DNA from: Malacoraja senta
Lineage: Eukaryota
DNA: 43,253 bases
NCBI GenBank assembly: GCA_038087875.1
Contig: JAXLNO010000041.1
Location: 186,001-229,253 of the forward strand
Direction of reading: 5' to 3'
Position 1 is the stretch's first letter, and each line of letters begins with the position of its first letter. A model generated the notes under the pieces. The model was not told the origin of the DNA. It was given only the letters and a program-made list of their open reading frames with translations, and ran no database searches. Both the position numbers and the translations under genes were made by a program. Positions 1,337 through 29,605 of this stretch are shown here, in pieces.

Positions 1337-1374
1337 TGTTTTTGTAAGGGGCTTAACTTGTTTCCATCACGGTG
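1337..1374 (-). other. V(D)J recombination signal sequence, 23-type (22-bp spacer)
   Basis: Minus strand: heptamer CACCGTG (1374-1368), spacer ATGGAAACAAGTTAAGCCCCTT (22 nt), nonamer ACAAAAACA (1345-1337). It directly follows the YYCALC codons. Heptamer and nonamer each differ from consensus (CACAGTG / ACAAAAACC) by one base. Confidence 0.92.
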
Positions 1375-1840
1375 CGGCACAGTGCGCAGTAATAGACTGC
1401 AGAATCGCTGAGATCCAGCCCTGAGATACTCAAGCTGGTGAACTTAATCGCGGTATTGAGCACAATAGAGAAACGAGTATCAACGTATTGGGCCTTATAT
1501 TCATATGTGTTGGTGTCTCTCCACATAGTAAACTCGAGCTGCATGCCTGGATATTGTCGGTACCATAATAAAGTATATCCACTCCATGTGGTATCATAGT
1601 TACAAGTTAAAGTCACCGCTTCTCCTTTTGTCTTCTTCGCCGAGTGCAGTGGCTGTGTGACAGATTCTCCGTGAATAATGACTGTAAAATAAATATATTG
1701 AGATAGTAACAGACATCGGAGTCTCATGAGATTGCACTTCTCAAAACCTGAATGAGAAAGGCGAGTAAAACTGAAAAATTTGATCCCGAATTACCTGTCA
1801 GAAACGCTCCCCACCCAACACAGATGCCGACGAAACGCAT
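1375..1840 (-). CDS. TRAV/DV: T-cell receptor alpha/delta variable gene segment, apparently functional: leader exon 1840-1795, 113-bp phase-1 intron 1794-1682, V exon 1681-1375
   Basis: The leader exon is 46 nt (MRFVGICVGWGAFLT+G) and ends at the donor G|GTAATT. The acceptor TTTTACAG| resumes in the matching phase to give VIIHG-ESVTQ...VTLTC...LLWYRQYPG...RFS...TSLSISGLDLSDSAVYYCAL. Cys23, Trp41, Leu89 and Cys104 are intact, with no stops, and an RSS follows. The YYCAL end and FR3 pattern fit alpha/delta better than beta, gamma or Ig; alpha versus delta cannot be resolved here. Confidence 0.9.
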
Positions 1841-1928
1841 TTTACCCGTTCACTCTGTACTAGCTGCGTTCCAAACTTGAAGCGACACAAACTGGTGCGT
1901 TTTCTCAGTCAAAGAGCGGCTGCTGGTC

Positions 1929-1937
1929 ACCGGATGT
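1929..1937. promoter_or_regulatory. Candidate ETS site in the V promoter region
   Basis: ACCGGATGT matches an ETS consensus and lies about 90 bp upstream of the leader ATG. This is a motif match only. Confidence 0.3.
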
Positions 1938-2166
1938 TCGCTGTCACTGCCCTGTTCCGCCAGTGATGGAGTCAGAGATGTGGGTGGCCAGCGGGGTCTC
2001 AGCCAATTGAAATACACGTAGCCGGAATCCAGCTTTCCCCCCGAGAGAAGTCGCATCCGCTTGAATGAACCGTGGTTGAGGAAGACATATTTGTTCTTGT
2101 AACCGGTAGTGAAGGTGCGAAGCCTGAGATTGTTAAACGGAACAATAATAATGTGCATATTCACAA

Positions 2167-2520
2167 ATGGAATAGATCGGGTAAACTCACAGAGTCTCTT
2201 GGCCAGATTAGGGGGATCGAGAAACAGAGAAAATAGATTTAAGGTCAGTGGGGAGGAAGATTTAATAGAGACCAGAAGGGTAACTTTTTAATACAAAGGG
2301 GGCTTATGGAACGAGCTGCCGGAGGTAGTAGTTAAGGCAGGCACAATCGCAAAGTTTAAGAAGAACGTTGACATATGCATGGATAGAACATATGTTGAGG
2401 GATAGGGGCGAAACACATGCGGGTAGGACTAGTGTAGATGGAACATGTTGGCCGGTGTGGGCAAGTTGGATCGAAAGGTGTGTTTGCGCGCTGTAAGACT
2501 CTATGATGCCATGATTCTAA
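2167..2520 (+). mobile_element. CR1 LINE 3' end fragment
   Basis: Degenerate ORF2 C-terminus (TGGAACGAGCTGCCGGAGG, WNELPE), then a 3' UTR ending CGCTGTAAGACTCTATGATGCCATGATTCTA. Confidence 0.75.
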
Positions 2521-2523
2521 AAA

Positions 2524-2654
2524 AACACAACAGTATTAACGGCATCCGTCCAAAGGCGACAGTTGTACAGTCGTTTCGCCAGTGTCGAGAAAACAACAGT
2601 GTTAACGGCATCGTCCAAAGGCGACAGTTGCACAGTCGCTTCGGCAGTGTCGAG
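2524..2654. repeat. Two-copy tandem repeat, about 65-66 bp unit
   Basis: ACAACAGT(A/G)TTAACGGCATC(C)GTCCAAAGGCGACAGTTG(T/C)ACAGTCG...CAGTGTCGAG starts at 2527 and again at 2593. Confidence 0.85.
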
Positions 2655-2896
2655 TAAAGGGGAGTTATTACGATGTTTTGATGTTTTAATTGAGAAATGC
2701 ACGTGATTTCGATATGAAGTATATTACAAGCAAAGCCAGAAGGATGTACAAGGAGACATTTTCAATCAATGTTTCCAGTTCCACTCTCCCTTCATCAGCC
2801 ATGTTTTGGCATATGAAATTCATTCCTGAGGACCTCATCACACCGAGTCCACGCCGACCACCGATGATCAGATAACTTTCGTTCCATGTTATTTCA

Positions 2897-3295
2897 CTTT
2901 TACATCTATTCCTTTCACACTTGGTGTATGCTTACAGAGGCCAATTAACCTAAAACATCACACCTATTTGGGATACGGGAGGAAATCAGAGCACCTGGAC
3001 GATACCGACACGGTCACAGCGAGACGGGAAAACTCCACTCAGACATCACCCGAGTACAGGATTGATCCCGGGTCTCTGAAGCTTTTACATCTATTCCTTT
3101 CACACTTGGTGTATGCTTACAGAGGCCAATTAACCTAAAACATCACACCTATTTGGGATACGGGAGGAAATCAGAGCACCTGGACGATACCGACACGGTC
3201 ACAGCGAGACGGGAAAACTCCACTCAGACATCACCCGAGTACAGGATTGATCCCGGGTCTCTGAAGCTTTGAGGCAGCAGCTGCGCCACTGTGCC
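2897..3295 (-). mobile_element. HE1/V-SINE-like SINE with an apparently perfect 185-bp tandem duplication (2897-3081, 3082-3266)
   Basis: Minus-strand head GGCACAGTGGCGCAG...AGAGACCCGGGATCAATCCTG. The body is repeated with period 185 and CTTT microhomology at the junction. Confidence 0.85.
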
Positions 3296-4180
3296 GACAA
3301 AATGTGTGAATTGTTTTTATAAAGAGTGCAGCTGGGTGATTGTTGAACTTTAACCACAGCTAACCGGCAAAATAGGTTTGGAATTTCCATGAGTTGCAGC
3401 AGTATATCGAGTGGTCTGGTGATCTGCATTCTGCGCACAGACCGCTGCTGCCTGGATTCGGTTCGTGGTCAGGGGTTATGGCTGTTTTTTTCTATCTCCA
3501 ATGGAAACACTATTAGACCGCGCACCGTTCACTCTGCGTAGTATCAGCGTCGCCGCCACCACGTGAACAGTCAGCAGCTCACTAACATTTAAAATGATAT
3601 ACTTATGCAAAATACACAAAGATTATTGCTACCAACGGCTAACATTACCATAATCCCGACAGGGTCAGGCGGCCAGGGGTCTCAGAATCAAATTAATATT
3701 GAGATTCGCTTTCAAAATATATCTCCAAAATCAAAGAAAATATAAACCAACAATGGCCCACAAATCATCTTTTCGAATATGCTAACTATACAACGTGATG
3801 TCAGTCATGTAAACAAACCACTGGATATTGGAAGATAATTCTAATGCACTCTCGCTCACTTTCTCGCGGAGTGGCGTGGATATCAGGGCAGTTGGGGAGG
3901 AGCAGCTATAAATTGAGATATAGCAACATTTGACTGGGTCTTTACATGGAAATGGTTCCGCCTTCACAGAACTCGACTATGGCAAAAACAAGTGCGATTG
4001 TTGTGAATTGTGGAACCAGTCATAGTACGTCAAGTTTTTGTATTTCAAAATATATACTTTATTCGAGAAATAAATATATACAATACATGATCGTTACAAA
4101 ACCCCATCCGACATTCTCGGAGGCTAAACATATATTCAATACTGTTTACACAAATTACACAATTTTACCTCCCACCTTAG

Positions 4181-4335
4181 GGGTCACAAGTAACATTAGA
4201 ACATTTGCAGATGACACAAAGCTGGATGGCAGTGTGAACAATGAGGAGGATGCTGTGAGAATGACTTCGACAGGTTGCGTGAGTGGGCAGCTGCATGGCA
4301 GAAGCAATTTAATGTGGGTAAATGTGAGGTTAGCC
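4181..4335 (+). mobile_element. CR1 RT fragment
   Basis: Translates to IRTFADDTKLDGSVNNEEDA (RT catalytic FADD motif). Confidence 0.8.
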
Positions 4336-4360
4336 ACATAATTAATGTGAGGTCAGCCAA

Positions 4361-4822
4361 GTAATTCCACATCAATGTATTATCAATGCATTCCGATGAT
4401 TTCGCCCTAATATCTGGAATAACGTCACATGCGGCCCCCCCTGTCTGTTTTATTGATAAAAACATCGCTCAAAATATAACTATTTGATCAAGGACATTCC
4501 TTGCTGATATTTATTTCCGGTCATTTGGCACGTTATACGTTAAATTTTCTTATGATTTTCTTCATGAAGTGCCAACAGGTGAAAGATATTAATGCCGCTG
4601 CTGTTTCCAATTATATTCACTCCCACCTAGACAGGTCCATGTGATTTACATCATTTAGACCGCTGCACAGGAACCATTATCGTTTGTTTTGAAGAGGAGC
4701 TCCAAGCGAAACCCAGGAAAATATTATTACTGGGTACATGTCAAGTGAATTCAACAGTGTCTGGTAAGAGCAGTAGAAAGGTAGAAAATACAATATTACA
4801 TCGCAGCATGTGTTGATAAGTG
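4361..4822 (+). repeat. Old paralogue (U0) of the GPCR upstream block; ancient CR1 remnant
   Basis: Shares TCAATGCATT..GAT.ATTTCGCCCTAATATCTGGAATAAC, CTTCATGAAGTGCCAACAG.TGAAAGATA and ATCGCAGCAT.TGT.GATAA with 7880-8325 and, with more mismatches, 23280-23720. Confidence 0.7.
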
Positions 4823-5713
4823 ATCACAAGGTCATAAGTGATAAGTGCAGAATTAGGCCACTAGGCTCATCAAGCCTACTCCGCCATTTAATCATGGATG
4901 ATCCATCTCTCCCCCCCCCAACCCCATCTTCCTGCCTTCTCCCCATAACCGCTGACACTCGTACTAATCAAAAATCCATCTATCTCTGCCTTAAATATAT
5001 AAATTGACGGCTTCCACAGCCTGGTGTGGCAAAGAACTCCACAGATTCAACACCCTTTAATTAAAGATATTCTTCCTCCTTCTTCCCAAAGGAACGCCAT
5101 TCCATTTTGAGGCTATGGCCTATGGTCGAATACTCTCCCTCTAGTGGAATCATCCTCTTCACGTCCACTCTATGCAAACCTTTCACTATTCGATAAGTTT
5201 CAATGTGGACCCCCATGATGCTTCCAAACTCCCGCGAATGTCGTCAAACGCTCGTCATATTTTAACCGACTCCTTTGCTGGGATCGTTGTTGTAAACGTA
5301 CTCTGGACCCTATCATGAACTGGGAATTCCTTCCTCAGATATGGTACCCACAATTGCTCACGATACTCCAAAAGCGACCTGACCAGTGCCTGATAGTGCC
5401 TCAGTATTGCATACCTGTTTTTTGTATTATTGCCCTATTGAAATAAATGCTAGCATTTTGTTTGCCTTCCTTACTACCAATTCGATTTACAAATTACCTG
5501 GTTTGGGTATCCTGCACTAGCACTCTCAAGTCCCTTTGCACCTTCGATTTCTGGATTCTCTCCGCAGTTTGTAAATGGTCTACGCTTTTATTCCTACTTC
5601 GAAAATGCATGACTCCACACTTTGCTACTCAATATTCCATCTGCCACTTCTCTGCCCACTCTCCCAAACTATCCAAGTCCTTATGTAAAGTTTCAGCTTT
5701 CTCTGCACTACCT
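4823..5713 (-). mobile_element. 5'-truncated CR1 LINE (RT C-terminus and 3' UTR)
   Basis: Minus-strand translation includes LHKDLDSLGEWAEKWQMEY. A short repeat tail (CATAAGTGATAAG) lies at the left end. Confidence 0.8.
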
Positions 5714-5736
5714 GTGTATGGAGCACGCTGCCAGAG

Positions 5737-6890
5737 ACAATAGGCAATAGACAATAGGTAAAGGAGTAGACCATTCGGCCCTTCGAGCCATTCAATGTGA
5801 TCATGGCTGATCATCTCAAATCAGTACCCCGTTCCTCCGTTCTCCCCATACCACCTGGCTCCGCTATCTTTAAGAGCCCTATCTAGCTCTCTCTTGAAAG
5901 TATCCAGAGAACCGGCCTCTACCGCCTTCTAATTAAGATAATTCCACAGACTCACAACTCTCTGTGAGAACAATTGTTTCCTCGTCTCCGTTCTAAATGG
6001 CTTACCCCTTATTCTTAAACGGTGCCCCCTGGTTCGGGACTCCCCCAACATCGGGAACATGTTTCCTGCCTCTAGCGCGTCCTAAACCTTATTACTCTTA
6101 TATGTTTCAATAAGATGCCCTCTCATCCTTCTAAACTACAGAGTATACAAGCCCAGCCGCTCCGTTCTCTCAGCATATGATAGTCCCTCCATCCCGGGTA
6201 TTAACGGTGCACTCCCTCAATAGCAAGAATGGCATTCCTCAAATTAGGGTACCAAAACTGCACAATACTCCAGATGTGGTCTCACTGGGGCCCTGTACAA
6301 ATGCAGAAGGTCCCTTTGCTCCTATACTCGACTCCTCTTGTTATATAGGCCAACATGCCATTCCCTTTCTTCACTGCCTGCTGTACCTACATGCTTACTT
6401 TCATAGAATGACGAACAAGGACCCCCCAGATCACATTGTACTTCCACTTTTCCCAACTTGACGCCATTTAGATAGTAATATGCTTTCCTGTTTGTGATAC
6501 CGAAGTGGATAACTTCACATTTATTCCCATTAAACTTCAACTGCCATGCATTTGCCCACTCCCCCAACCTGTCCAATTCATCCTGCATTCGCATAGCATC
6601 CTCGTCACAGTTCACACTGCCACCCAGCTTTGCGTCATCTGCAAATTTGCTAATGTCACTTTGAATCCCTTCATCCAAATCATTTATATATATTGTAAAT
6701 AGCTGCGGTCCCACCACAGAGTCTTGTTGTACCCGACTTGTCACTGCCTGCCATTCTGAAAGGGACCCGTTAATCCCCACTCTTTGTTTCCTATCTGCCC
6801 ACCAATTTTCCATCCATGTCAGCGCTCTACCCCCAATACCATGTGCCATAATGTTGCCCATTAATCTCCTATGTGGGACCTTATCAAATG
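5737..6890 (-). mobile_element. 5'-truncated CR1 LINE
   Basis: ORF 6322-6861 gives GPQLFTIYINDLDEGIQSDISKFADDAKLGG...WQLKFN (RT). Tail CAATAGGCAATAGACAATAGG at 5738-5758. Confidence 0.9.
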
Positions 6891-8348
6891 CGTAGGCAGG
6901 TGGGGTGTGCAGCCAGTCTTGATTATATTGCCTCTCGTGATAACGTTCAAAACTTGAAATGTCAACTCACAACATCGTTCACTGCAGAGAAATAAAATAT
7001 CCTGACCTATACAGTCTCTCTCGGAATTGAACGTCTCCAGTCCTGGCAAAATCTTTGTCATTAATAACCTGCCACTCGCCAGATTAATGGTATCATTGCT
7101 AACATATTGCAATCTGGACAACATTGCACGTGCGGTCTCGCCAACGTCCTATACCAGATGGTTAAACTCCACTTATACCCAACTGCGTGCGACTCCGGAA
7201 GTGAAATAAGCCCACACCTTAAGATGGCTGAGGGAAACAATATCCTACAATCCCCATACAAATTGACTCGCATCGCTTGCAAGCCGATTGCTCATGAACA
7301 AGATGGAGAAAAGGCCCTGTTTCCGTGCTGTATAGCATGCAACGACCACTTACAGTGAGAGTTGGTTGAATATACCTGCCTCTCCCGTGAGGAGGAGTTG
7401 GCGCTGCGTCCCCTTTAAATATTTACCGACTCATTTTAGACTACTGCCCTCTTTTAGAGACCTATATCAGAGGAACAAAATAAAATACCTCCACTGATCA
7501 TCACCGTGTCTTATTTTAACACTATAACTCCTCGGGGTCTTGTGCGCGAGGAACCTCTGCATTATCAAGTCCATCTCACAATTTACAGCGTCCAATATGA
7601 GTATCATTCTTGTGAATAGAGTTGCATACTCCCTAGTTAAAATGGATTCTTAATGAATTATTTCGAAAAATAATATCCCTCCTCCTGTGCTGTACTGCTC
7701 TGTGAAGGTTTTTCCTGTGAATTGCTTAGTTTGAGTGCACAAAACATGACACTTCTTTCTTAGGTCACGACTTTCTTCAGAATGATCTACTCCCAAACAT
7801 GTACCGCCGGTCAGATTCTCCTTAACCGATTCAGTCGGCTCTATCATCTTGCATATCAACATTCTTGATATCTCCAACGGATCAATGCATTGAGATTATT
7901 TCGCCCTAATATCTGGAATAACATCAAAATCTATTCACCTCTCGTTTTATGAATTAACACATTTCTTTCAAGATAACCTGTAGATCAAGAACATTTCTTG
8001 TCGATATTTATTTCTGGTCAGTTTCCACGTTGCACATAATATTTGCATATCCTTTACTTCATGAAGTGCCAACAGTTGAAAGATAGTAATGCTGCTGTTG
8101 TAGCTGAATTGTATGAGATGTCGTCTAGAAGGTTCCTGTGACTTACATCATTTGGAACGCTGCCCAAGAATGATTCCCTTTTCTTTTGAAAAGGAGCTGC
8201 ATGAGGAATCCAGGATCAAACTATTAATGGGTGCATGTTAATGAATGGAACAGTGTCTGAAAAATGCATTACAAATGCTACAAATAAAACACTATATTAT
8301 ATCGCAGATTGTGTGGATAAATGCTATATGACATGTATTTTGCTGCAT
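6891..8348. repeat. GPCR upstream block U1, a mosaic of ancient CR1 remnants, paralogous to 22074-23745
   Basis: Colinear with 22301-23745 at roughly 85% identity by eye. The minus part reads like decayed ...YRTLARPHVQCC. The plus part reads like decayed KVP...W...KR...NPGSNY (CR1 KVPEDW...KKG...NPGNYRP). Confidence 0.7.
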
Positions 8349-8563
8349 CTTCGTGTCACACCTTTAAATTTAAAAATAGAATGTGCAGTCGTATCTTACA
8401 TTTCCCTTGTGCGGTTGGTACTCAGCTGGTGCCTGAGTAGCAAACGATCGCATAATGAGTTTGATCGCTTTGTATCACCAGGGAGCAACCTATTTGTTGA
8501 ACGGTCCAAAACGGATGTCCGCGGGGAGGTGAACGCACGCTGTCCTTCACTTTTTTCTAGGAA

Positions 8564-8571
8564 TATAAATA
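8564..8571 (+). promoter_or_regulatory. Candidate TATA box of the GPCR
   Basis: TATAAATA about 80 bp upstream of the exon-1 ATG, next to a small CpG-containing patch. Motif and position only. Confidence 0.35.
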
Positions 8572-8644
8572 TAGCGCGGTTTGACTTCTCACTTTGACTT
8601 CTGTAAGTTTTGAACGGCATAACTGGGTACGGCTTGACGGAGAA

Positions 8645-10498
8645 ATGGGTTGGAAGTGGAATTTGACAGCTGAATATTATTATTATCCAATTCTAGCAGC
8701 AATCGCAGTACCTGGTAGGTCAATGGAACGTGTATGCGGGACTGACTTGTGGGATGATGTGTTGATAAAGGCAATGTTAAAGGTAAAGTGCAAATAGTGT
8801 GCGAAACACGGGAATGCTGGACTGCATCCGTCGTCTATGGATTATGCTTGGTGATATTAACTCCGAGGAACTTGAAGTCCTCAACCACTTCCACTTCAGG
8901 AGCGTTGATGGTGACCGGTGATCCTTCGCTTTTCCTGAAATAGATAACTTGCTCCTTCGTCTGGTTGATACTGACGTTGAGATTGTTATTATCTAGAAAG
9001 TTGTGGGAGCAGTTACAGCCGAATTTGGCCGCGGGTCGTAAGTGTTTAGGGTGAAGTGTCGGGGACGGAGCAGACATCTTTATGGGGCACCGTTGTTGAG
9101 AATTATTGTGGATGGGGTGTTATCACTGATTATCACTGATTAAGGTATGTTCATTAGAAAGTCGAGTATCCACTCGCAAGCTGGAGTGCTGATCGCGAGG
9201 CTCGGGAGTTTATCAATGTGTTCGGATGGGAGTAGTGTTGAAGGCAAGTGTTCCAGCGGAGAAATGGGAATCTAACGTTCGCCTCCTTCCTGCCTGGCTG
9301 TTACAGAGAAGGGTTTAGGTCCAGGACGATGGCGTCTGATGCTGAACTGCTGCTGCAATATGCAGTCTGCGGTTCATCAAAGGCGGCTGGGAGAGGGCTC
9401 ACGCTACCTGCGTATACCGCTGATAGCTAATGCGCACATCTCCTTAGCACGCACTGAGGGATTGCAAGCGGAGCAATCGTTTTCGACCAAATAAACAAAG
9501 CGTACCAAAAATTTACCCCCACCCCAAATTAGCATCGCGTTTCCCTTCCATGTAACGACAGTTTCCTCTTTTCTACTCCCCCAGTGAACTTGTTGGCGAT
9601 TGTGATCCTGTCGCGCAGAAATTGTGGTCTCTCAAAATGCACCACTCGTTACCTGGTGGCCATGGCGGCGGTGGACCTCTCAGTGATTGTCTGCGAAGTG
9701 ATATTACATCGGATTGCCGACGTTTACTGGTGGCACACATTCCTCTTCCACAATACTGTGTGCAGGTGCATTATGTTCCTCGCTCCCGCCGCCGTTGCCT
9801 GTTCGGTTTGGCTCACGGTCGCTTTCACATTTGATCGCTTTGTGGCCATTTCCACTCAGAATCTGAGAACCAGATACTGCACCGAAAGAACCGCGGTGGT
9901 GGTTATAGTGACCCTAATTGCGTTGTTCTGTTTACAGAACGCTCCCTGGCCGTTTGCGTACACTTATTATCTCAGGGATCAGCAGGGTATACAGTGGGGT
10001 TGCCAAATACCATATCACTTTTATGTCCTGCCCTCGTGGATAGCATTTTCCTGGACTCAACAGCTGCTAATCCCAGTCATTCCATTTTGTTTGATTATGC
10101 TTATGAACATGCTCACTGTCAGACGCATTTTAGTGGCCAGTCGTGTCCGTAGAAAACTCCGCGATCTCAGTAGTGAGGACCCCGAAATCGCAAACCGCAG
10201 ACGGTCCGTAATTTTACTCCTAGCAATTTCCAGCAGTTTTATGCTGCTCTGGAGCACAACTGTAGCATATTTCGTTTTCTATCGATGTACGAACGCATTT
10301 AGGTTCAGAGGGTTGAAGAACCCATTTGCAACATTTGAACAAACTGGAATTATGCTACAACTGTTGAACACCTGCACAAACACGCTTATTTACACCGTGA
10401 CCCAGAGGAGGTTCAGAGAGCAGCTGCTCCAGGTACTCATTTTCCCCTTCACCCTAACTGTAAGTTTAATAAAACTGAGAAAACCTGGTGTAAAATAA
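8645..10498 (+). CDS. GPR139/GPR142-like class A orphan GPCR, copy A, intact: exon 1 8645-8714, intron 8715-9584, exon 2 9585-10498; 327 aa
   Basis: Exon 1 is MGWKWNLTAEYYYYPILAAIAVP+G with donor G|GTAGGT. A polypyrimidine CCCCCAG| acceptor resumes in phase 1 to give VNLLAIVILSRRNCGLSKC. There are seven hydrophobic segments, TM2 D, SVWLTVAFTFDRFVAI (DRY-like), an ECL2 WGC and TM7 NTLIY. N-terminal sequon NLT. No stops. Family assignment is from recalled motif similarity; orthology is not established. Confidence 0.9.
8790..9440 (-). mobile_element. Ancient Rex1/Babar-type LINE RT remnant in the GPCR intron (antisense)
   Basis: Minus translation NNNLNVSINQTKEQVIYFRK...VEVVEDFKFLGVNIT, with decayed AFNT.P.KL-type and RST.DAI-type RT segments further 5'. 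Confidence 0.7.
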
Positions 10499-11624
10499 CA
10501 TTACAATAATAATCCCTTCGTGAGTGAGTGCAAAAACTATGTAATGAAGGAGTTTTCTCTGAAATCTTTCCGCATCAATTTTCAAAAAAATAGCTGAGAA
10601 ATACAATCTGAACGCGTTCCCTGCATTGGAATGCACATTTGTCCATCTATTCAACATGCGACACAATAACTTGGGACAAAATTACTTTTCCTTCAGTTGT
10701 TTGTGCCAGTTTTGATATCCATTGGGATCAGTGTCCATTTGTGACGTGGCGCCACCTTCCACAGCAATCTTTTCTGAATCTGATTTACCAACAAACCCTC
10801 CATCCGTAGAATCCAGCCGCCACGCCTCCAAATGAATGGCAATAGCTCTACTATTCCGGTCCTCGATTCTTCCCCATCATCACATTGCTCATGTAAGTAC
10901 TCATTGATATAATGAGATTACAATGTACATTAAAGATTCACTCTTCACCAGTTGCATCCAACGGTAGCGGATGGTGTTTATTCAAGCAAGGGAATCTAAT
11001 AATATTTTAAGGAAGCAGAGTCTAGTAGTCGGGGCGGTAAAGGGAGAAGGTTCGCTTTTCTGATTGGTCATAGTTACAAATTGGTCTGGCATGTATCTCC
11101 CACGCCACTACCACAGCGCAGACGCTGCAGTTCTGCAGAGGCTAAGAGAGTAGAATAAAAACAAGAGGAAAACGCTCGAAAGGAAACTTCTCAGAATCGA
11201 GTGCACCTCAGGTAGGACTCCGCAGTTGGGCAGACATTGAGAAAAATGGAGAAGGCTTCCAATTTAAATGTAACTGATTACGAAGAATAAGGAATCTTTC
11301 AGCTGTTTGTGCCAGCTAAGATATTCACGAGGATCAGGGTTGAATGGTGACTTTTGTCTTGGCGGCAACGTCTGCACAAATCTTTCCATAACATAATTTA
11401 CATTCCTTCATACTTTGAATGCAAGAGCAAGCCTTCAGCTCTCAATGGCAATAGGTCCACAATTCCGTTCCTCAACCGTTCCATGCCCATCACACTTTTC
11501 TTTTTGTGGCCATCTATGATTTTCTATGTAAGTGCCCAGACCACAATTCTTGATAACCTTCTTGGAGACTGCTTCTCCCACATTCGTGCAATAATATGTC
11601 TATACACACACATATATTCCATTT

Positions 11625-11927
11625 GGAGATACAGCGCGGAAACAGGCTCCTCGACACAGCGAGTCCGCGTTGATCAGCGATTTCCGCACATTAACACCAT
11701 CCTACACATTGCGGATAATTTAACATTTTTACCGAAACCAATTAACCTACAAACCGATACGTCTTTGGAGTATTCGAGGAAACCGGAGCACCCGGATAAA
11801 AGCCTACGGGGAGAACGGACAACGGGTCACGCGGATAACGGACAAACTCCGTGCAGGCAACTACAGTGGTCAGGATCAAATCCGGATCTCTGACGGTTTA
11901 GGACAGCATCACTGCCTCTGCGGCACC
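11625..11927 (-). mobile_element. HE1/V-SINE-like SINE
   Basis: Core CCAATTAACCTACAAACC...GGAAACCGGAGCACCCGG on the plus strand, tRNA-like head at the right end, CR1-like tail at the left. Confidence 0.8.
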
Positions 11928-12009
11928 CCTGCGGGTTTGATAGTAAACAATGTTATGGAAAGATTTTTGCGGAAGGTGATGCCAAGTGACAAGTCATAAA
12001 TCAACCTTG

Positions 12010-12240
12010 ATCATACATAGTAATATATATAGTAATATATATAAATATAAATATTTTAAAAATATGTTAATACATATAAAAATAATTGTTATAATAATAT
12101 ATACAAATATAATAATATATACAAATAATATTAGAGAATACTATTTATTGTCAAACAAAACAGATATGGTTCGTACGAAATGTATAATTGTATATATTAT
12201 TATTATATTTATTTTAATATATTTATATATATATTTAAAT
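12010..12240. repeat. AT-rich low-complexity (TA-rich) tract
   Basis: Runs of ATATAT and AATAAT; the paralogue is at about 32885-33110. Confidence 0.8.
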
Positions 12241-12825
12241 GGATGGATGGAGATATTAACAGAGGACATCGCATCAGGCGTTAAACAGATTAAATGCGTT
12301 TGGCGGAATGTCACAATTCTAGAATCGTTTTGGCATTACGAGAACGCACAGAAGGAAGAGCAGTTCTCAGCAAAGTGTGTGGAGGCTTCTCTGAACTGCT
12401 GACAAGAGTTCACTTCAAATGCTTCCAACTGACTCAGTAGATGTTTTTCTCACATAGAAGTCGGAATGTTGCACGAAAGCAAATATCTAATTTGCTCTGT
12501 GGGTATTACTTCCCCGATTTAATCAAATCCCTGCTTGCTTTTGTTTGCAATTGCAAAACAACACACTTCCCACATTATCTTCCGTGGCCCATGGACCGAC
12601 CCTTTACCCAACCGTCCATTTACTGTTCTCTCTTGAGTCCTCCCTTCATCTTTGCAATCTCTGAGTATCGGCCATAACGCTGTTCCTACAATGTACGCTC
12701 TATTCGCTAACAAAATCAACCAAAGACTTAATTTTAAAGAAAAGAATCACATGAGATAAGCGTTAGTGGGAATAGTAAGTTATCAGCAATGGTCTCTCCA
12801 ACGTGCATCACTTTCCAATGAGGAC

Positions 12826-13493
12826 AATAGAAACATAGAAACATAAAAAATAGAAGCAGGAGGAGGCCGTTCGGCCCTTCGAGCCAGCATCGCCATTCAC
12901 TGTGATCATGGCTGATCGTCCGCAATCAATAACCCGTGCCTGCCTTCTCCCCATATCCCTTGATTCCACTAGCCCCTAGAGCTGTATCTAACTCACTCTT
13001 AAATCCATCCAGTGACTTGGCCTCCACTACCCTCTGGGGTAGGAAATTCCACAAATTCACAACTCTCTGGCTGAAAAAGTTTTTTCTCACCTCAGTCTTA
13101 AATGGCTTCCCCCTTTATTCTAAGACGGCGGCCCTTGCTTCTGGACTCGCCCAACATTGGGGCCATTTTTCCTGCATCTAGCTTATCCAGTCCTATTAGG
13201 ATTTTATATGTTTCTTTAAGGTCCCCCCTCATGCGTCTAAACTCCAGTGAATACAAGCCTAGTCTTTTCAATCTTTCCTCATATGACAGTCCCTCCATCG
13301 CAGGGATCAATCTCGTGAACCTACGCTGCACTGCCTCCATCAGAAGGAAGTCGTTCCTCAAATTAGGAGACCAAAACTGTACACAATACTCCAGATGTGG
13401 TCTCACCAGAGCCCTATACGACTGCAGAAGAAACTCTTTACTCCCAGACTGAAATCCTCTTGTTATGAAGGCCAACATTCCATTAGCTTTCTT
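12826..13493 (-). mobile_element. CR1 LINE 3' end with (ATAGAAAC)n tail
   Basis: ORF 13098-13511 gives LVRPHLEYCVQFWSP...RRFTRLIP...LEFRRMRGDL. Confidence 0.9.
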
Positions 13494-13789
13494 GTAATTG
13501 TAAACCAGCATTTTCGGTTCCTTGCTGCTGCAGATGCAACAGCTGATTTTACACCTGCTCTATTCCCACAATTCATGCCAATTGAAATCTATGGGGAACC
13601 ATACGAGGTTGGGGGGGATGAACGGGCGAGGAGAACGTCCATACATTTAATATTTCAGGTAAAGGATTTAGGGTAGTTGATGTTGGGAGAATGGTTTCAC
13701 AGTGGAGAGAAACCAGGGAGGGATTGGGATGAGGTGTGGCGGGCGGGAGTTACATGGAAACAGTCCCGTCGAGTCAACACCGCCACCGA

Positions 13790-14031
13790 TTACCCGTCCA
13801 CAACCATTTCCATGTTATCTCAGTTTCGCACGACTCTCCCCATACGAGGGGGAATTTTCAGAGGGCTGATCAACCTACAAACCCGCATGCCTTTAGGACG
13901 TGAGCTCAAACCGGGACACCCGGAGTTAACACACGCGTTCTCATGGAGATTGCCCAGCAGCACCCGAGTTCAGGATCACACACGTCTATCTGGAGCTGTC
14001 AGGTAGCAGCTCTACCAGCCGCGCCACTGTG
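13790..14031 (-). mobile_element. Degenerate HE1/V-SINE-like SINE
   Basis: Minus head CACAGTGGCGCGGCTGGTAGAGCTGCTACC; core ATCAACCTACAAACCCGCATGCC. Confidence 0.7.
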
Positions 14032-14946
14032 TATTCCGCTAATAGTGGGCGATTTCCTTCGGCTGCTCCAGTGTCCTCCCACGAAGGATGGCGATAATCT
14101 ATCTGCCATTGCCGCGTGGAAAGTAGTATCATCGGTTGGAGTTGATTGGCAGATGAAATTGAGAGATTTGCAATAGTAAGTAACAAGAATGAGATTCGAG
14201 GGATTGCTCAGAGCCGGCTTTAATTCCTCCTGCAGGGAGGGCAAGGAAAAGATGTGAAATCCCCAAAATTTATTTTCTCCGCCGATGACGGCTGAGATTT
14301 GTATAGATTCAAATTTGAGTTGGGTACTCTCTCCCCAAATCCTCTTCGCTCCAGACTCTAGTATCCCGATTACACCATACGGCAAACACATCCTGTCATT
14401 TGGGTCTTGGGTCCTGATATTTAGTTGACAGCGATGTACATGTTGTTCAATTTGAGGAATTCGCTGGGGCTGCTGGTTTGCGCTCAAAGGTAATTTCACG
14501 GTTGTTCACAGCTCATTCTGATTTATTGGCCCCCACATCCTGCTGTACGTTCGGCTCCTCTCTCTTTCTCTCGCTCTTTCCACCTCCGTCGACCCACCCA
14601 CGGCCCCTCGGTCCAAACTGCAAACAATCTTTTTTATGTTGGATTCCAGTGGATATCACACTCTCAGAAAGGAAGCGGCAAATAAACCTCGTGGCCTTCG
14701 TTCAAGCAGTCCGATGGAACGGTCTCCCTGGACATCGACATCCCAAATGTCCCATTGGCGGACAATGGACGATAGTGATACGCCAAAGCGCCAATCTGAC
14801 CATTTCAATGAAGGCGCTTATCTAAAATGGTCCCATATGGTTGTACTTGGCGCATGTTCTTCTAAATCTTTTCTAACCATTAATTAGCCCAAATGCATCT
14901 TAAGTGTTGTAACGTTGCCGACTACGACCACTTCCTTACACATATC

Positions 14947-15240
14947 GGCACCGTGGCGTAGTGGTAAAGCTACTGCCTTGGAACGCCAGAGACCCGGGAT
15001 CGATCCTGACTACGGCTACTTGTCTGTACTGAGTTTGTCCATTCTACCCGTGACCTGCGTGTGTTTTCTTCGAGATCTTCGATTTCACCCAACACGCCAA
15101 AAAAGTCGAGTATGTAGGTTACAGGTTAATTGGCTTGGTGTAAATGTAAACATTGTCACTAGGGCAGTTTTAAGTGATCACTGGTGGGTGCGGACTCGAT
15201 TAGGCGAAGGGCCAGCATCCGCGTGGTATCTCCACATTAA
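14947..15240 (+). mobile_element. HE1/V-SINE-like SINE with Pol III A/B boxes
   Basis: A box TGGCGTAGTGGT (14954-14965) and B-box-like GGGATCGATCC (14996-15006). The 3' end GGCGAAGGGCCAGCATCCGCGTGGTATCTC is CR1-like. Confidence 0.8.
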
Positions 15241-15359
15241 ATATCCACCGTGAGGGAACAAATGCGCTTCACGACGTGTTTGAATGTTTCTCCTCCCTCC
15301 TTCGGCTTATGCACTCGTTTGGAGAACCGTGCCAAATATGAAACTCTTTATCTATTCTA

Positions 15360-15560
15360 CTCGTGATACTATAAACCATGAAAGTTCACCTCACGAACCC
15401 GTACAGTGAAGGGATGAAGTTCTCAGATCAATCCAGTTTCGTTCTGAATGGAATCCTTCGGGTCCCGGCAACATCCCAGTAAATCTTTTCTGGACGCACT
15501 CGAAGTTAACGTCATCCTTCCTGAAGTATTGACAGAACTGCATTCGAGAATGATATTCCA
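15360..15560 (-). mobile_element. Ancient CR1 RT C-terminal remnant
   Basis: Minus translation resembles VQKRFTGMLPG (CR1 VQRRFTRMLPG). Confidence 0.55.
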
Positions 15561-16654
15561 AGTGCAGAAAGAAGGAACTGCAAAAGCTACTTTAAAAAAA
15601 GATACATAACATTATGTAGACATTATTGGGTCAAACAACATCTCCGGAGAAAATGCACACGATGTTACACATTTAATGCTGCAAACCTGTAAATAAAAGT
15701 CGAACCTTACACTCCTTTCACCTCCAAAACATTATCGGGAAATCCATCGAGCAACAGGGATATTTTCACCTCTGTGGTCCTGGCGCTTTTCAGTAATCGC
15801 GACCAGATGTGAAGTCTGGTGACTTCACTTATAGCATGGATTTATATACCAAGAATGCCATTCTTCTGCCGTAACCAACAGATAATAGTTGGCTATCATT
15901 TTGGAACTAGCCATTCTTCTTAGTGCTGAAAATGCATGCTATTTATTAATATCATCCACCGAGCTAGCCTCAAATGTCTCTGAAATAGAGACGTTTACCT
16001 TTTCTCCATGCTAGGTGTTCTTGTTGCCGTGATTCAGAGGCCACGTGATTTCGTGGCAATTGTAAGTGAGCCCGAATATGTTTCCAAGCATCTAGAAGCG
16101 AACCTGCTTGCTTGACATGTGGTGCTGTTAGTAGACGACTCCGTCTTAGCTGAAAACGTGTATACTCCTTTCATTATAGAACTCACCATCGTCGTACACA
16201 CATGTTCGTGTCCCATAGTGTCAACCACTGCTTACATTTTCTGTACATTATCAGCTCACCGGACTAAATGCGAACTTACAGGTGGAATGGTCTAAAGCAA
16301 GCACACATCTGAAGACGAGTGGTCGAGACATAGGATGGCATGTCCATGCGCGTCGATTGGCTCTGTCTGCAAACATTGTTAAGCATGGGCAAGGTAAGGG
16401 TAAGGGCTTGCCTCCGTAATTTATAACTCAATAAGCAAAGATTAGAGTTCTGCTGGAAATTAATTCAAACCACGCAGCCACGTTCTGCACGCTCTATATC
16501 TGTTGTCCCTCAGAACTCTGTCATACCATGCCCAGCTGTTGAGCAGAACAAATATGCGACATCTTGCTCGCATTGCGTTGTGCGTGACATTCGTTATTGG
16601 TAACAACGTTTATATTTTAATGTTGTCATGTCCTTCAAGAGAGAATTGCAAATC

Positions 16655-17486
16655 TGTAGATTGATGACGCATGTGAACCAATCACACTTAGCCAGCATCA
16701 CTAACTCCACCCCACTATAACACGTATACTAAGGCCTATTCCCAGCACCGTCAGTCTGAGCAGCTAGGATGAACTGACTACACCTTGTCTTTAAATGCTG
16801 CCAAGTTACAGTGCTGATTATATATGTGTTTAAATCATATACTCTCAGGTGTCTGTCTACATGGTGTCAGAAGTGGCATTAATCCCAAAGAACTGAACAC
16901 TGCCATTAAGCGCCCACACCATCCCACGAAGACAGTAGAGAATGTCGCGGCAAAGATCGGAACGGTCACCCTATTTTCTGTCCGAGATGCAAGGAAACGG
17001 TCATACGACAGATCCAGCAGACCTCTCCAGCCTCTACTGCCGGGCCAGGTCGTCCGTCTATGAACTTCAACTGGACATTCTCGTCTGGGCACTGTTGTAC
17101 GCCCGAGTGATGAGCCGCGATCGTACCTTGTGGACTGTGAGGGAGCGGTATACCGGAGAAGTCGACAACACCTGCTTGCTGTGAAGGAGCCCCGACCACC
17201 GCCTGCTGATCCCTATGCTCCGCCGCTCCAGCTCCAGCCGCCTTTCGCAATGTCTCACGCCCGTGGCCGCATGCCTTGCACGCCCCCCTCCCACGTCCCT
17301 CGGTCTCCACTAACCACGGGGTTACACATACAGCATGTTTCCCCTCTCGGTCACCACAAGCCTCTCCCGTGCGATTTTCACCTTCAGCCTCTCCGCCTAA
17401 TCCTTCAGTGGAGGGAGGGGATGGTTGGGTCTGATGCTGACTAAAGATGTGTTTAAATTATATATTGTCTCAGGTGTCTGTCTACA
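16655..17486 (+). mobile_element. Miniature internally deleted Gypsy/Ty3 LTR retrotransposon (832 bp), copy A
   Basis: TSD AAATC (16650-16654, 17487-17491). The 5' LTR 16655-16861 has termini TGTAGA...TCTACA. PBS TGGTGTCAGAAGTGG at 16862-16876. RT piece INPKELNTAIKRPHHP is fused to integrase C-terminal LLPGQVVRL...PRSYLV...RRSRQHL. PPT GGAGGGAGGGGA precedes a shortened 3' LTR (17422-17486). Confidence 0.88.
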
Positions 17487-17507
17487 AAATCGAAGCGGTC
17501 GGGTTAA

Positions 17508-17690
17508 ACATAGAAACATAGAAACATAGAAAATATGTGCAGGAATAGGCCATTCTGCCCTTCGAGCCTGAAACGCTATTCAATATGATCATGGCTGATC
17601 ATCCAACTCAGTATCCTGTACCTGCTTTCTCTCCATACCCCCTGATCCCATTAGCCACAAGGGCCACATCTAAATCCCTCTAACTAAATG
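17508..17690 (-). mobile_element. Short CR1 3' end with (ACATAGAA)n tail
   Basis: ACATAGAAACATAGAAACATAGAAA, then GGCCATTCTGCCCTTCGAGCC...ATCATGGCTGATC, as in the other CR1 ends here. Confidence 0.75.
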
Positions 17691-19809
17691 TTGTGGCCTA
17701 GCATAACGGGTCCACAAATCAAGGAGGCACAAGGGAAGATACAAAACAAATTACACAAGGTATGCGTAGTCCTTGCCATCAGTAAATGTCGTTTGGAATG
17801 TAAATGGCCATCGGGATGTTCCCATTTTCAGTATTAGAGATACAGCACAGAAACAGGCCCTTCGGCCCACCAATTTCACGTTGCCCAGCGATTTCCGTAC
17901 ACTAACACTATGCTACACATTGGACACTTTAGTTTCATTCTTGGAACACAGATTCTTGGATTCATGGAACACATCGCAGAACAGCGTATATTGACGTCGC
18001 AACAGGTCTCATGCTTCCAGAAACCCACCGCACCGACGAGGTCCTCTCTCCAGCAGCCGGTCTCCTTACCGGCCCTATGTCGGCCTCCTCCCATTGTGGG
18101 CGGGCGAACCGGGACGTCCGGCTGAGTTCCCGCGCGCGGCGCTTGTTCTCCGTCCTCGGTCTGCGGCGGGCGAAGCATGCATACCGGGCTGGTCCTCAGT
18201 TATTGGCGATTGAGGTCTGGCCTAGCCAGCGATACTCTGTCCGCTGGGTGTGGCCGCGGCTAGATCACATCTGGCCGCGCTTTGGCCACATTCGAGACAC
18301 ATGCAGGTTTGCCGTTTAATTGGTCTCTATAATTGTTCCTGTGTGCAGGAGAGAGGCTGTGTGCGGGTACTTGCTGGTCGGCGTGGACGTGATGGAGCGA
18401 AGGGACTGTTTTCACTCTGTAAACTAAACTAAAGAAAACACAAGCAATGTCTTATAGTTCACTCTATAATTCGCTCTCTTCAGAAACGGCACGAAGTTAG
18501 ATTGTTTTCCTTTCAATGCTACATTATCGTGTAACTGAAATGTAACTAGCAGATGAAAGTGTTTTCACCGGAAGTAAAGATAATGAAATGTTTCTGGCTT
18601 CTTCTTCGCATTTCTTTATTCTTCCAAGTACTTTTTAGATAGAGAGAACAAAAGATGAAAAACTCTTTTGTTATTAACATAAATCCTATTAAATCGTAGA
18701 CAGAAATATCAGCGAAATTGATTCGAATTGATCGGAGAGCACCTTGGTTCGCATTGAATAATTACAATTGTCGAAACAGAATCTCTTGTTTGTTTCATAT
18801 TGCTCATGTTGACAGTTGTTCAAAGAAGAAGAAAGATTCACTTGGTTAACTTGGTCAACACATTCCTATGTATTCATAATTTGAATGTTTAGTAATAAAT
18901 TGATCTTTGGCTAAATCGACTAAACCTGTTGTTTTTATTCCTGTGTTGAAAGAAGTTGCGCAACTTCTGGGGGCAGATAAATCTTCGGTAACCCGTCATG
19001 GTCAATGTGTATCTGCAACATCAGAGGTGCAGCTGTAGAAACGCTGCAGAATATGACAGTGCCCCAATGCCTTAATTCATCGAATCTGCTTTTTAACATT
19101 AGGACCGAACTCTCTCTTGAGTACATCAATTTTATTTTATTGCTAATATTATGCAATCTCCGGTCAGTCACCAATCAAATACACTCTACTGATTGCACCT
19201 GGGGAATTCTATTTTGAAGAAAAATAAACAGCCTTTATCATTAACCTTCTTTTTCGCCTTCTAACTGCTGCTTTTCCGCTGGAGATTTATTTTATATTCT
19301 GTGCAATTGTACATGTTCAGTATCTGCGGTATTTTGTATTTTATTAAACTACGCCATATTGCAGCTGGTCCAAATTCGGCGCACCTTCTGCTGCATATGC
19401 CATACATGCAGGGTACAGCCATTGCCTAAAAATTAAAAAAAATACTTCGTTTAACAGCAGGCACAATCACTGTTCATAATCACTGCACCTCTTAGGACTT
19501 CCTGTGGCCATTGCGAAAATAATACCAAACTTCCTAAACCTGGACCAGACTCTGTCTGTTTTGGAACGTTGAAAATATTTTGTAGCGTGCTATCCAGTCA
19601 GCAGAAAGACAATACTTGATTGTAATGGAGCCATTTGTAGTATTATAGATACATGATAATGGCACAACGTTTAATGCAAGGTGAAGCCAGCATAGCCCAA
19701 TCATACATAGTGCTAGGGTCAGCATTTAGGTAGATCGGTTGAGGAACAGATTTTTAGTCACAATGTCTGTGTCGACCTGATACCAAGAGCAGCTCGGATC
19801 TACCTGCGC

Positions 19810-20170
19810 GTTACCGATATCCCTCCATTCCCTGCAGATTCATATCTCCATCCAAATCTATTTTAAATTCCACTATCGTATCCGCCTTAACCATCAGCCC
19901 TGGCAGCGCCTTACATGCACTCGCCACACTTCGTGTAAAACATTGCGCCGCACATGTTCGTTAAATTTTGCCATTCGTACCATAAAGCTGTGACCTCTTG
20001 TATATAATGTTTTCCATTCTGGGAAAATCAAAGTTCCGCCGGTCTACCGGGTCTCATAAGTTTACATAACTCGACCAGGTCTCCCCGCAATCTCCGACGT
20101 TCCAGAGGGATAAAAATCCAAATATGACCAATCTCTCCCTGTACCTAATACCCGCCAATCCAGCCACCGT
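19810..20170 (-). mobile_element. Old CR1 3' fragment
   Basis: Decayed version of the CR1 ORF2 C-terminus and UTR seen at 4823-5713 and 12826-13493. Boundaries are approximate. Confidence 0.55.
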
Positions 20171-20344
20171 GCGCAACTGGACAACTGCGGCTGTGAAACA
20201 CGCTGTTCTTATTACGTTTCCCCATCTTGCTGAATTGACAAAGTCATTCACTAATGGCTTTGCTGCCGGTCACCAGTTTCTGCAGCGTGCTAGTTTAGTT
20301 AGTTTACATTAGTTTGGTGTAGTTAAAGTAAACTAAACAAATAC

Positions 20345-21120
20345 AAGGATAAATATAAAGGTGGATAGTAAAAGCGTCTTTAGGTATGTGATGAGGAAAA
20401 AATAGTTAAGACCATAGTTGGACCCTTGAAGACTGAACAGCGTCAATTTATTACGGGGTACAAGGAAATGGCAAATGAGTTGGACAGGTACTTTGGATCC
20501 GTCTTCACTAAGGAGGACAGAAACAATCTTCCAGATGTACTAGCCGGATGATCTGGGGTGACGGAGGAACTGAAGGAAATCGACAATTGGCAGGAAATGG
20601 TGTTGGGTAGACTGATGCGATTGAAGGCTGATAAATCCCCAGCGCCTGATGATCTGCATCCCAGGGTAGATAAGAAAGTGACTCTAGAAATCGTGGACGC
20701 ATTGGTGATCATTTTCCAATGTTCTATAGATTCAGGATAGGTTCCTGTGGATTGGAGTGTAGCTGATGTTATCCCACTTTTTAAGAAAGGCGGGAGAGAG
20801 AAAACAGTGAATTATAGATCAGTTAGCTTGACATCGGTGGTAGGGAAGATGCTGGAGTCAACTATGTAAGATGAAATGGCGGCTCATTTGGAGAGAAGCA
20901 ACAGGATCGGTCCGAATCAGCATGGATTTACGAAGGGGAAATCATGCTTGACTAATCTTCTGGAATTTTTTGAGGATTTAACTAGGAGAATGGACAAGGG
21001 AGAGCCAGAGGATGAAGTGCACCTGGACATTCAGAAAGCATTTGATAAAGTCCCACATTGGAGATTAGTGGGCAAAATTAGGGCACATGGTATTGGGGGT
21101 AGAGTGCTGACATGGATAGC
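20345..21120 (+). mobile_element. CR1 RT fragment (plus arm of an inverted pair)
   Basis: LKADKSPAPDDLHPRV...QHGFTKGKSCLTNLLEFFE...AFDKVPH. Confidence 0.85.
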
Positions 21121-21930
21121 AAATTTGCTCATGTTACTTTGATTCCCTTCATCCAAATCATTTATGTATATTGTAAATAGCTGCGGTCCCAGCACCGACC
21201 TTGCGGTACCCAACTTTTCACTGCCTGCCATTCCGAATGGGACCCGTTAATCCCTACTCTTTGTATCCTGTCTGCCAAACAATTTTCCATCCATGTCAGC
21301 GCTCTACCACCAATACCATGTGGCCTAATTTTGCCCACTAATCTCCTGTGGGACCTTATCAAATGCTTTCTGAATGACCAGGACACTACATCCACTGGCT
21401 CTCCCTTGTCCATTTTCCTACTTCCATCCTTAAAAAAATTCCAGAAGATTAGTCAAGCATGATTTCCCCTTCGTAATTCCATGCTGACTCGGACCGATCC
21501 TGTTACTGCTAACCAAATGTGCCGCTATTCTTTTATAATTGATTCCAGCATCTACCCAACCACCGATGTCAGGCAAACTGGTCTATAATTCCCTGTTTTC
21601 TCTCTGCCGCATTTCATAGAAAGTGGGATAACATTAGCTACCCTCCAATCCACAGGAACTGATCCTGAATCTAGAGAACATTGGAAAATTAACACCAATG
21701 CATCCGCAATTTCTAAGCCACTTCCTTAAGTACCCTGGGATGCAGACTATCAGGCCTCGGGGATTTATCAGCCTTCAGTCCCATCAGTCTACAGAACACC
21801 ATTTCATGCTTAATGTGGATTTCCTTCAGTTCATTTGTCACCCCAGATCCCCTGGCCACATCAAGAACATTGTTTGTGTCCTCCATAGTGAAGACGGATC
21901 CAAAGTACCTTTTCAACCCATCTGCCATTT
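21121..21930 (-). mobile_element. CR1 RT fragment (minus arm of an inverted pair)
   Basis: Minus translation covers YFGSVFT...HPRVLKEVA...MDKGEPVDVV...GPQLFTIYINDLDEG...SKFA, the same region as the plus arm. Confidence 0.85.
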
Positions 21931-22073
21931 CCTTGTTCCCAATAATAAATTCACTTTTTTCAATCTTCATGGTCCAATCTTCAAGGATGTAGTTTAGGCA
22001 GGTATTGTCGCAACGTTTAAGAAATATTGCGACAGGTACATAGATAAGATATGTTAAGAGGAATATGGGCCAT

Positions 22074-26700: not shown

Positions 26701-26896
26701 AATTTGAATCCCTGCCCGATGCACCAGTTCCTCAACCACGCAATTATCCTCCACCTCATTCCATTCCTACTCTCACCGTCGCTTGGCACAGGTATTAATC
26801 CTGAGATTGTTACCTTTGCGCTCCTTCACCTTAACTCTCATCCGAACTCCCTAAATTCTCCTTTCAAGACATCTTCTCTTTTTCTACCTATGTCGT
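23746..26896 (-). mobile_element. About 3.15-kb CR1 LINE: end of ORF1 (SGNH esterase-like), then ORF2 (APE endonuclease and RT), degenerate
   Basis: ORF1 part FLDHWDLFWGRCDLYRKDGLHLN. Endonuclease part GVYYRPP...IVGDFN...LDLLL...GSSDHN. RT part (24013-24984) QHGFVPGRSCLTN...SKYADDTKIGG. It has frameshifts and small deletions, and the usual 3' UTR is replaced by an A-rich stretch. Confidence 0.92.
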
Positions 26897-26959
26897 AACA
26901 TATGTTATCACTAATTCTCACTGATTAAGGTATGTTCATTAGAAAGTCGTGTATCCAAT

Positions 26960-29178: not shown

Positions 29179-29605
29179 AGAAAGTCGTGTATCCAATCGC
29201 AAGCTGGAGTGCTGATCGCTAGGCTCGGGAGTTTATCAATGTGTTTGGAAGGGAGTAGTGTAGAAGGCAAGTGCTCCAGCGGAGAATTGGGAATCTAACG
29301 TTCGACTCCTTCCTGCCTGGCTGTTGGAGAGACGGGTTTAGGTCCAGGACGATGGCGTCTGATGCGGAACTGCTGCTGCAATATGCAGTCTGTGGTTCAT
29401 CAAAGGCGGCTGGGGTGGGCTCACGCTACCTGCGTATACCGCTGATAGCTAATGCGCACATCTCCTTAGCACGCACTGAGGGATTGCAAGTAGAGCAGTC
29501 GTTCTCGACCAAATAAACAAAGCGTACCAAAAATTTACCCCCACCCCAAATTACCATCGCGTTTCCCTTTCATGTAACGACAGTTTCCTCTTTTCTACTC
29601 CCCCC

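Follow-up and report, generated by a model that had tools for sequence, protein, structure and literature searches.

The window analysed here, a stretch of 43,253 nucleotides (nt) from the skate Malacoraja senta (assembly GCA_038087875.1, contig JAXLNO010000041.1, positions 186,001 to 229,253), carries at its left end a variable (V) gene segment of apparent T-cell receptor (TCR) type and, divergently from it, units of a G-protein-coupled receptor (GPCR) family related to GPR139. We consider it probable, at roughly three chances in four, that the window is part of a skate TCR alpha/delta-type V region in which chondrichthyan GPR139-like GPCRs are interspersed. The V is unrearranged and apparently usable. 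To judge by comparison with related loci, it appears to belong to a V array and not to stand alone, with no edge of the locus shown, and a V beside GPCRs is seen to be a layout common to other batoids.

The V gene at the left end lies on the minus strand, is complete and in unrearranged germline form, and has no stop in the V exon. The preliminary description of this DNA had reported one complete V here, with leader, intron, V exon and recombination signal sequence (RSS), and all four parts were recovered:

1795..1840, minus strand: leader exon (L-part1), 46 nt, ATG at 1840-1838, donor ACAG/GT
1682..1794, minus strand: leader intron, 113 nt, GT...AG, acceptor TTTTACAG, alignable with the little skate orthologue
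1375..1681, minus strand: V exon (L-part2 and V region), open frame ending ...YYCALCR, of TCR alpha/delta type as judged by similarity
1337..1374, minus strand: 23-type RSS, heptamer CACCGTG at 1374-1368, 22-nt spacer at 1367-1346, nonamer ACAAAAACA at 1345-1337

The leader is split in the manner of V genes, with L-part1, a short intron and L-part2 fused to the V exon between consensus splice sites, and a heptamer, a spacer within 23 +/- 1 nt and a nonamer adjoin the V coding end. The V exon reads ...VIIHG/ESVTQ ... WYRQYPG ... LSDSAVYYCALCR and matches the Pfam V-set model (E 1.3e-11). Residues C26, W39, and C98 (equivalent to Cys23, Trp41, and Cys104) fall in invariant or near-invariant alignment columns, and the YYC motif is present. 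The end of framework region 3 (FR3), ...LSDSAVYYCAL, is as in teleost and Callorhinchus V segments, and the succession of leader exon, short intron, V exon, and 23-type RSS is that of germline TRAV/TRDV of jawed vertebrates, although the heptamer CACCGTG and the spacer of 22 nt are unlike those of typical members. A second candidate heptamer, CACTGTG at 1384-1378, was rejected, since it would require a 32-nt spacer and the orthologue has its canonical CACAGTG at the other of the two sites; it is an internal heptamer look-alike inside the conserved V coding end.

Similarity searches point to the class of this V. As a single query against the PDB, it found its best one-stretch matches, of about 61 bits, in human Vdelta1 and TRA constructs, while antibody heavy- and light-chain variable domains (VH and VL) scored 20-30 bits each, so that per domain the TCR alpha and Vdelta1 chains reach about twice the score of antibody V domains. 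A word search returned germline V segments of Callorhinchus (50% identity) and teleosts, one of them named as a TCR alpha/delta variable; the closest V of the database shares no more than about 50% identity with the window V. The sole mammalian match was P0133, a V resembling TRAV9, which reaches 142 bits against TCR alpha chains. A profile built from these V segments plus those found in other loci (alignment A2) matched TCR alpha chains in the PDB at about 97 bits and Vdelta1 at 116 bits, with two-domain single-chain antibody variable fragments (scFvs) at about 100 bits in total, and the plain single TCR or antibody chains noted among its top 60 matches were TCR alpha only. An ESM Atlas search with the V homologue P0121 gave generic V-set clusters only, which do not discriminate between V classes. 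The TCR alpha/delta type that the preliminary description had assigned is well supported by the PDB, word, and profile searches: the window V would be closer to TRAV/TRDV than to TRBV, TRGV, or immunoglobulin (Ig) V and would be expected to serve in TCR alpha and/or delta chains.

The RSS faces the window's left end, 1.3 kb away, and for this reason linkage to J and C segments is not readable within the window; any D, J, or C segments would lie beyond that end, where the RSS points. The whole window was scanned on both strands for RSSs with 12- or 23-type spacings (heptamer at least 6/7, nonamer at least 7/9), and the V's own site was the sole match; a looser scan gave one weak additional site. 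A J-type scan of the whole window (RSS plus FGxG) returned no match, and when 25 database V proteins and the window V itself, 26 queries in all, were run in tblastn, no second V emerged from the 43 kb, every match outside 1300-1900 having E > 0.01. The earlier statement that no second V, D, or J could be seen by eye in the following 41 kb is upheld by these scans.

The partner of the V is a class-A GPCR gene of 327 amino acids in two exons, here called GPCR-A:

8645..8714, plus strand: exon 1, 23 codons and 1 nt, donor CCTG/GTAGGT
8715..9584, plus strand: intron, 870 nt, with a polypyrimidine tract and AG at 9583-9584
9585..10498, plus strand: exon 2, rest of the seven-transmembrane receptor, intact, stop TAA at 10496-10498

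V and GPCR-A are divergent, with 6.8 kb from ATG to ATG, in agreement with the intact divergent GPCR of the preliminary description. Exon 1 encodes MGWKWNLTAEYYYYPILAAIAVP plus one base, comprising a short N-terminus, an NLT sequon, and the start of the first transmembrane helix (TM1). The open reading frame (ORF) at 9584-10498 is taken as exon 2 because it starts directly after the polypyrimidine tract and the AG. The junction codon GTG (Val) yields the family consensus G-x-P-V-N-L, as in the annotated thorny-skate protein P0003. Homologues of exon 1, which was handled separately from exon 2 in all searches, lie 0.7-1.7 kb upstream of exon 2 in little skate loci L001 (two copies) and L006, sawfish locus L004, and thorny skate (Amblyraja radiata) loci L002 and L005, and in L002 and L005 they coincide with annotated gene starts; L003 too has a homologous first exon. 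Exon 2 matches Pfam 7tm_1 (E 3.9e-16) and no other Pfam model, and all 38 of the 38 residues invariant in a 26-member family alignment are present. Compared with the little skate gene, GPCR-A has a ratio of nonsynonymous to synonymous differences per site (pN/pS) of 0.54 (p = 0.006); with two thorny-skate genes the ratio is 0.46-0.48 (p about 1e-9). These ratios show that GPCR-A is under purifying selection, and it would be the only working GPCR gene of the 43-kb window.

A word search with the receptor returned 1004 proteins at E <= 1e-5; among the 120 matches listed, all with a source name were chondrichthyan, automatically named "probable GPR139". As a single sequence, GPCR-A scores 26.5 bits to human GPR139 in the PDB (E 4e-5) and 27.7 bits to the CCK-B receptor. 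With the family profile, GPR139 came first over its full length (68.6 bits, E 4e-18), followed by CCR5 (50.5 bits) and TRHR (48.8 bits); no olfactory receptor (OR) was among the best 60 solved chains, and no OR-type Pfam match was obtained. The family is strikingly similar to human GPR139 (structures 7vug and 9m42) in the TM1 stretch around the conserved Asn, but unlike it has FDRF for DRY, NTxIY for NPxxY, and an N-terminus of about 10 residues. The 7tm_1 match and the profile score make GPR139 the nearest characterised relative, while the low single-sequence score and a lineage-specific expansion of more than 1000 proteins speak against one-to-one orthology. GPCR-A is, on these similarities, a distant GPR139 relative and neither a GPR139 orthologue nor an OR; the GPR139-likeness proposed earlier holds in that GPR139 is the nearest solved relative with the family profile. 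In a tree of 121 sequences, GPCR-A falls within a batoid clade of 11 (support 99), where it groups with thorny-skate genes of chromosome CM021368.1. This clade is nested in a larger one of 37 rows, which also has subclades of catshark/houndshark, bullhead shark, sawshark, and sevengill and to which Callorhinchus is sister. The invariance of F-D-R-F and N-T-x-I-Y, together with so short an extracellular N-terminus, is unusual for a class-A family this large. Neither the GPR139-like genes of cartilaginous fish nor GPCRs within the TCR loci of these fish were treated in any paper that we found, and the family, with its more than 1000 annotated proteins and signs of purifying selection, has no describing paper that we could find in the searchable literature.

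The best named GPCR match, P0002 of the little skate Leucoraja erinacea, lies on a 170-kb scaffold, and its 24-kb locus (L001) can be aligned with the window. The order in L001 is V, GPCR, V, GPCR, with the V segments on the minus strand and the GPCRs on the plus strand:

1717-2064, minus strand: V_b, about 30% identical to the window V, with its own 23-RSS
Exon 1 at 8123 and exon 2 at 9923-10834, plus strand: GPCR1
15979-16275, minus strand: V_a, orthologue of the window V, 85% identical in amino acids
Upstream block, then exon 1 at 23956, plus strand: GPCR2

V_a is intact: it keeps the leader and the splice sites, its CACAGTG-22-ACAAAAACA occupies the position of the window V's RSS, and 44 of the 46 nt of the leader exon are identical between the two. 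It has GPR139-like genes on both sides, and the unrelated V_b stands on its J-proximal side; the neighbouring V segments share one orientation and have RSSs.

Further loci, with flanks limited to 10 kb in the other species, repeat the association in varied forms. A sawfish V with a 23-RSS lies 9.4 kb from a GPCR (L004), and a thorny skate V lies 5 kb downstream of one (L005). In little skate L006, a V that among single PDB domains matches IgNAR V domains best stands head-to-head with a GPCR at 6.8 kb, and thorny skate L008 has the order NAR-type V, GPCR, conventional V, NAR-type V, with an annotated two-V-set gene typical of a NAR-TCR (TCR delta) cassette. Such NAR-TCR double-V cassettes, which belong to elasmobranch TCR delta, adjoin sister GPCR genes in L006 and L008 and thereby tie the GPCR clade to TCR delta V territory; the window has none, its V being of the conventional alpha/delta type. 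In all, a V lies within 10 kb of a batoid-clade GPCR in 5 of the 6 batoid loci with DNA, from three species, while neither of two Heptranchias (sevengill shark) loci has a V within 10 kb. Head-to-head pairs, V on the minus and GPCR on the plus strand, occur four times at a spacing of 6.0-7.6 kb: one in the window, two in L001, and one in L006. The preliminary description had named GPCRs interspersed among V segments as an outcome that would speak against its own view of the window, and this is what the batoid loci show.

The GPCR unit is repeated within the window, as recorded by the following features, in which LINE stands for long interspersed nuclear element and RT for reverse transcriptase:

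6916..8348, plus strand: upstream block accompanying GPCR units, identity about 90% with 22301-23745 and 83-85% with two little skate blocks
9118..21460, plus strand: young duplicated block, copy 1, covering the 3' part of the intron, exon 2, some 11 kb of downstream DNA, and the next unit's head
23745..26903, minus strand: LINE fragment with endonuclease and RT ORFs at 24013-26152 (RVT_1, E 3.9e-36; Exo_endo_phos_2, E 9e-10), in copy B taking the place of exon 1 and the 5' intron
26958..29178, plus strand: AT-rich retroelement in the intron of copy B, flanked by a 17-nt target-site duplication
29179..43212, plus strand: young duplicated block, copy 2, 95.6-97.5% identical to copy 1, its last 340 nt being the third unit's head
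29606..30519, plus strand: exon 2 of the pseudogene GPCR-B, with CG for the acceptor AG at 29605 and a 1-nt deletion near 29946
42871..43212, plus strand: head of the third unit, the final 340 nt of copy 2

In self-comparison, 9118-21460 matches 26903-26957 plus 29179-43212 at the identity given for copy 2, and an older block, 6641-8348, matches 21119-23745 at about 90%. Since noncoding identity between the window and little skate is 85-90%, against 95.6-97.5% between the copies, the young duplication would be later than the split from little skate. In copy B, 770 nt containing exon 1 are replaced by the 3.2-kb LINE fragment, and no exon 1 of GPCR-B was found throughout the window; the acceptor reads CG, and the 1-nt deletion splits the reading frame. 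Because of these three losses the second copy is a pseudogene, in which, by our alignment, an old upstream block stands joined to a recently copied gene. The repeated duplication suspected in the preliminary description is confirmed as a tandem duplication, but its second GPCR copy is not an intact gene. The retroelement in copy B is 2.2 kb long with 27-34% GC, its ORF at 27243-27947 has no Pfam match, and its target-site duplication corresponds to 9156-9172 in copy A. Pfam searches of ten other ORFs of the window found LINE endonuclease domains only, and an Rfam scan of the window gave no match. An inverted repeat of 700 nt at about 86% (20418-21125 against 21977-21281) stands at the boundary of units A and B and recurs at 42170-42869; the structure at 20418-21977 may mark a breakpoint or be a transposon whose inverted ends are long.

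A GPCR unit, on the strand opposite to the V, would consist of some 1.5 kb of upstream block, followed by a short first exon, an intron of 0.9 kb, and exon 2. New units would arise through unequal crossing-over or tandem segmental duplication and later degenerate. The outcome here is one intact gene, the start of a third unit, and between them a copy inactivated by LINE insertions, an altered splice site, and a frameshift. V and GPCR duplicate separately here, because the repeated unit of the window contains no V and similarity within L001 is limited to the GPCR upstream blocks, which are 90% alike, while the DNA around the two V segments shows none. A recent co-duplication of V and GPCR as one cassette was rejected here on the same two grounds. 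Two birth-and-death families would in this way share duplication-prone ground without a working link.

The 6.8-kb spacer between V and GPCR-A consists largely of repeats, and its conservation is no higher than that of its surroundings:

1841..8644: head-to-head spacer, mostly repeats, roughly uniform 85-90% identity to little skate
2134..2511: high-copy element, summed word depth 1e5-1e6 against about 100 in the flanks (two whole-genome contig sets)
2897..3270: tandem duplication, 189 nt, perfect (100%)
6322..6861: RT fragment in the spacer

Several observations weigh against reading the window as part of a working V region. No D, J, or C segment lies on the 43-kb stretch, and because of this, membership of the locus rests on the type of the V and on the neighbours seen in other species. 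The V heptamer CACCGTG has a mismatching C at position 4, the spacer measures 22 nt against the standard 23, and a pN/pS of 0.64 between the V and its orthologue is not significantly lower than 1 (p = 0.3). A search of sequencing runs for the V matched two, both DNA contigs and none RNA; over 1000-2600 they span the leader intron and the spacer and lack the leader-V joint, on which account they are classed as DNA. The thorny skate has V and GPCR regions on two chromosomes, CM021368.1 and CM021380.1, one of which could lie away from J-C, and chance sharing of ground does not by itself account for the head-to-head arrangement that recurs at 6-7.6 kb. A 1270-nt Logan contig, P0001, was considered as a transcript and rejected, its sequence running through the intron and being genomic.

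Much of this would also fit an orphon, that is, a V copied from the true TRA/TRD locus, perhaps with a whole cluster of V and GPCRs, and unused for rearrangement. The missing J and C, the altered heptamer with its 22-nt spacer, the runs matching the V only as DNA, and the two thorny skate chromosomes can all be read in this way, as can the grouping of the window GPCR with CM021368.1 genes while the NAR-TCR (delta) cassettes are on CM021380.1. We nonetheless regard an orphon, which the preliminary description had offered as its alternative, as unlikely: the open frame, both splice sites, leader, and RSS are kept in two skate species, the little skate orthologue combines an equal 22-nt spacer with a canonical heptamer, the V neighbours in L001 are co-oriented and have RSSs, and the interleaving of several divergent V families fits a working V array better than a single stray copy. 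That description had favoured a distal edge, with the window V outermost and the GPCR array as flanking territory in the position that ORs hold in mammals, at the 5' end of the locus and slightly within it. The leftward RSS and at least 41 kb to its right with GPCR units and repeats and no V would suit an edge, but in little skate the orthologue of the V is also flanked J-proximally by a GPCR, with another V beyond, other loci have V segments on both sides of GPCRs, and the window ends within the third unit, which leaves the array unbounded. An edge is not supported by these comparisons and seems to us improbable.

It is less likely still that V and divergent GPCR share regulatory elements, either with the opening of V-region chromatin driving GPCR expression in lymphocytes or with GPCR promoters aiding V accessibility. 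The recurrent head-to-head pairs at 6.0-7.6 kb and an association that has persisted since at least the skate-sawfish ancestor are what such a link would predict; the spacer, however, is mostly transposon-derived and conserved no better than neutral DNA, GPCR units duplicate without V segments, and L004, L005, and L008 have other orientations and spacings. That this GPCR subfamily has been in the batoid V region since before the skate-sawfish split, with head-to-head pairs sharing regulatory DNA that leads to receptor expression in developing T cells or to promoter-aided opening of V segments for recombination, is in our view equally a long shot.

In the mammalian TRA/TRD locus, OR genes are interspersed with TRAV segments at the 5' end (PMC2275272; PMC3457774), and the comparison with them drawn in the preliminary description is apt (PMC2275272). 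In both cases rhodopsin-class GPCRs of a large birth-and-death family lie among or next to TCR alpha/delta V segments, but the skate family is not of OR type, has GPR139 as its nearest solved relative, consists of two-exon genes, and is hosted by a cartilaginous fish. The interleaving also looks more extensive than in mammals, with V-GPCR-V-GPCR order and GPCRs between NAR-TCR cassettes. We know of no functional link between ORs and TRAV segments in mammals, and GPCRs inside the mammalian V array have so far been treated as a curiosity of synteny. A different and far more expanded GPCR family threaded through the TCR V segments of skates and a sawfish suggests that other gene families with rapid duplication can in general settle in V arrays, and it provides a second, independent case for testing the effect of V-region chromatin on embedded genes. 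It also calls for caution in annotation, as a V that seems isolated on a short contig from this genome probably belongs to a normal array.

In the thorny skate, NAR-TCR double-V cassettes lie amid GPR139-like genes on CM021380.1 (about 58.33 Mb; L008:7071-23188), and conventional V segments lie amid GPR139-like genes on CM021368.1 (about 102.9 Mb; L002, L005). TRA and TRD may be split in this species, or one of the two regions may be an orphon cluster; a split of TRA and TRD has reportedly been described recently for newts. In L005:1-1502, an annotated two-V-set gene upstream of the GPCR, containing ...YLCLVEF..., resembles a non-rearranging gene of the Ig superfamily (IgSF) and not a TCR V. 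In L006:1130-1531, on the minus strand, a NAR-type V end, ...YYCQAEYKWTKQPVYP, is followed by CACAGTG-12-GTAAAAACT and, about 30 nt on, by a J-like GSGTK, an odd and tightly packed V-RSS-J arrangement.

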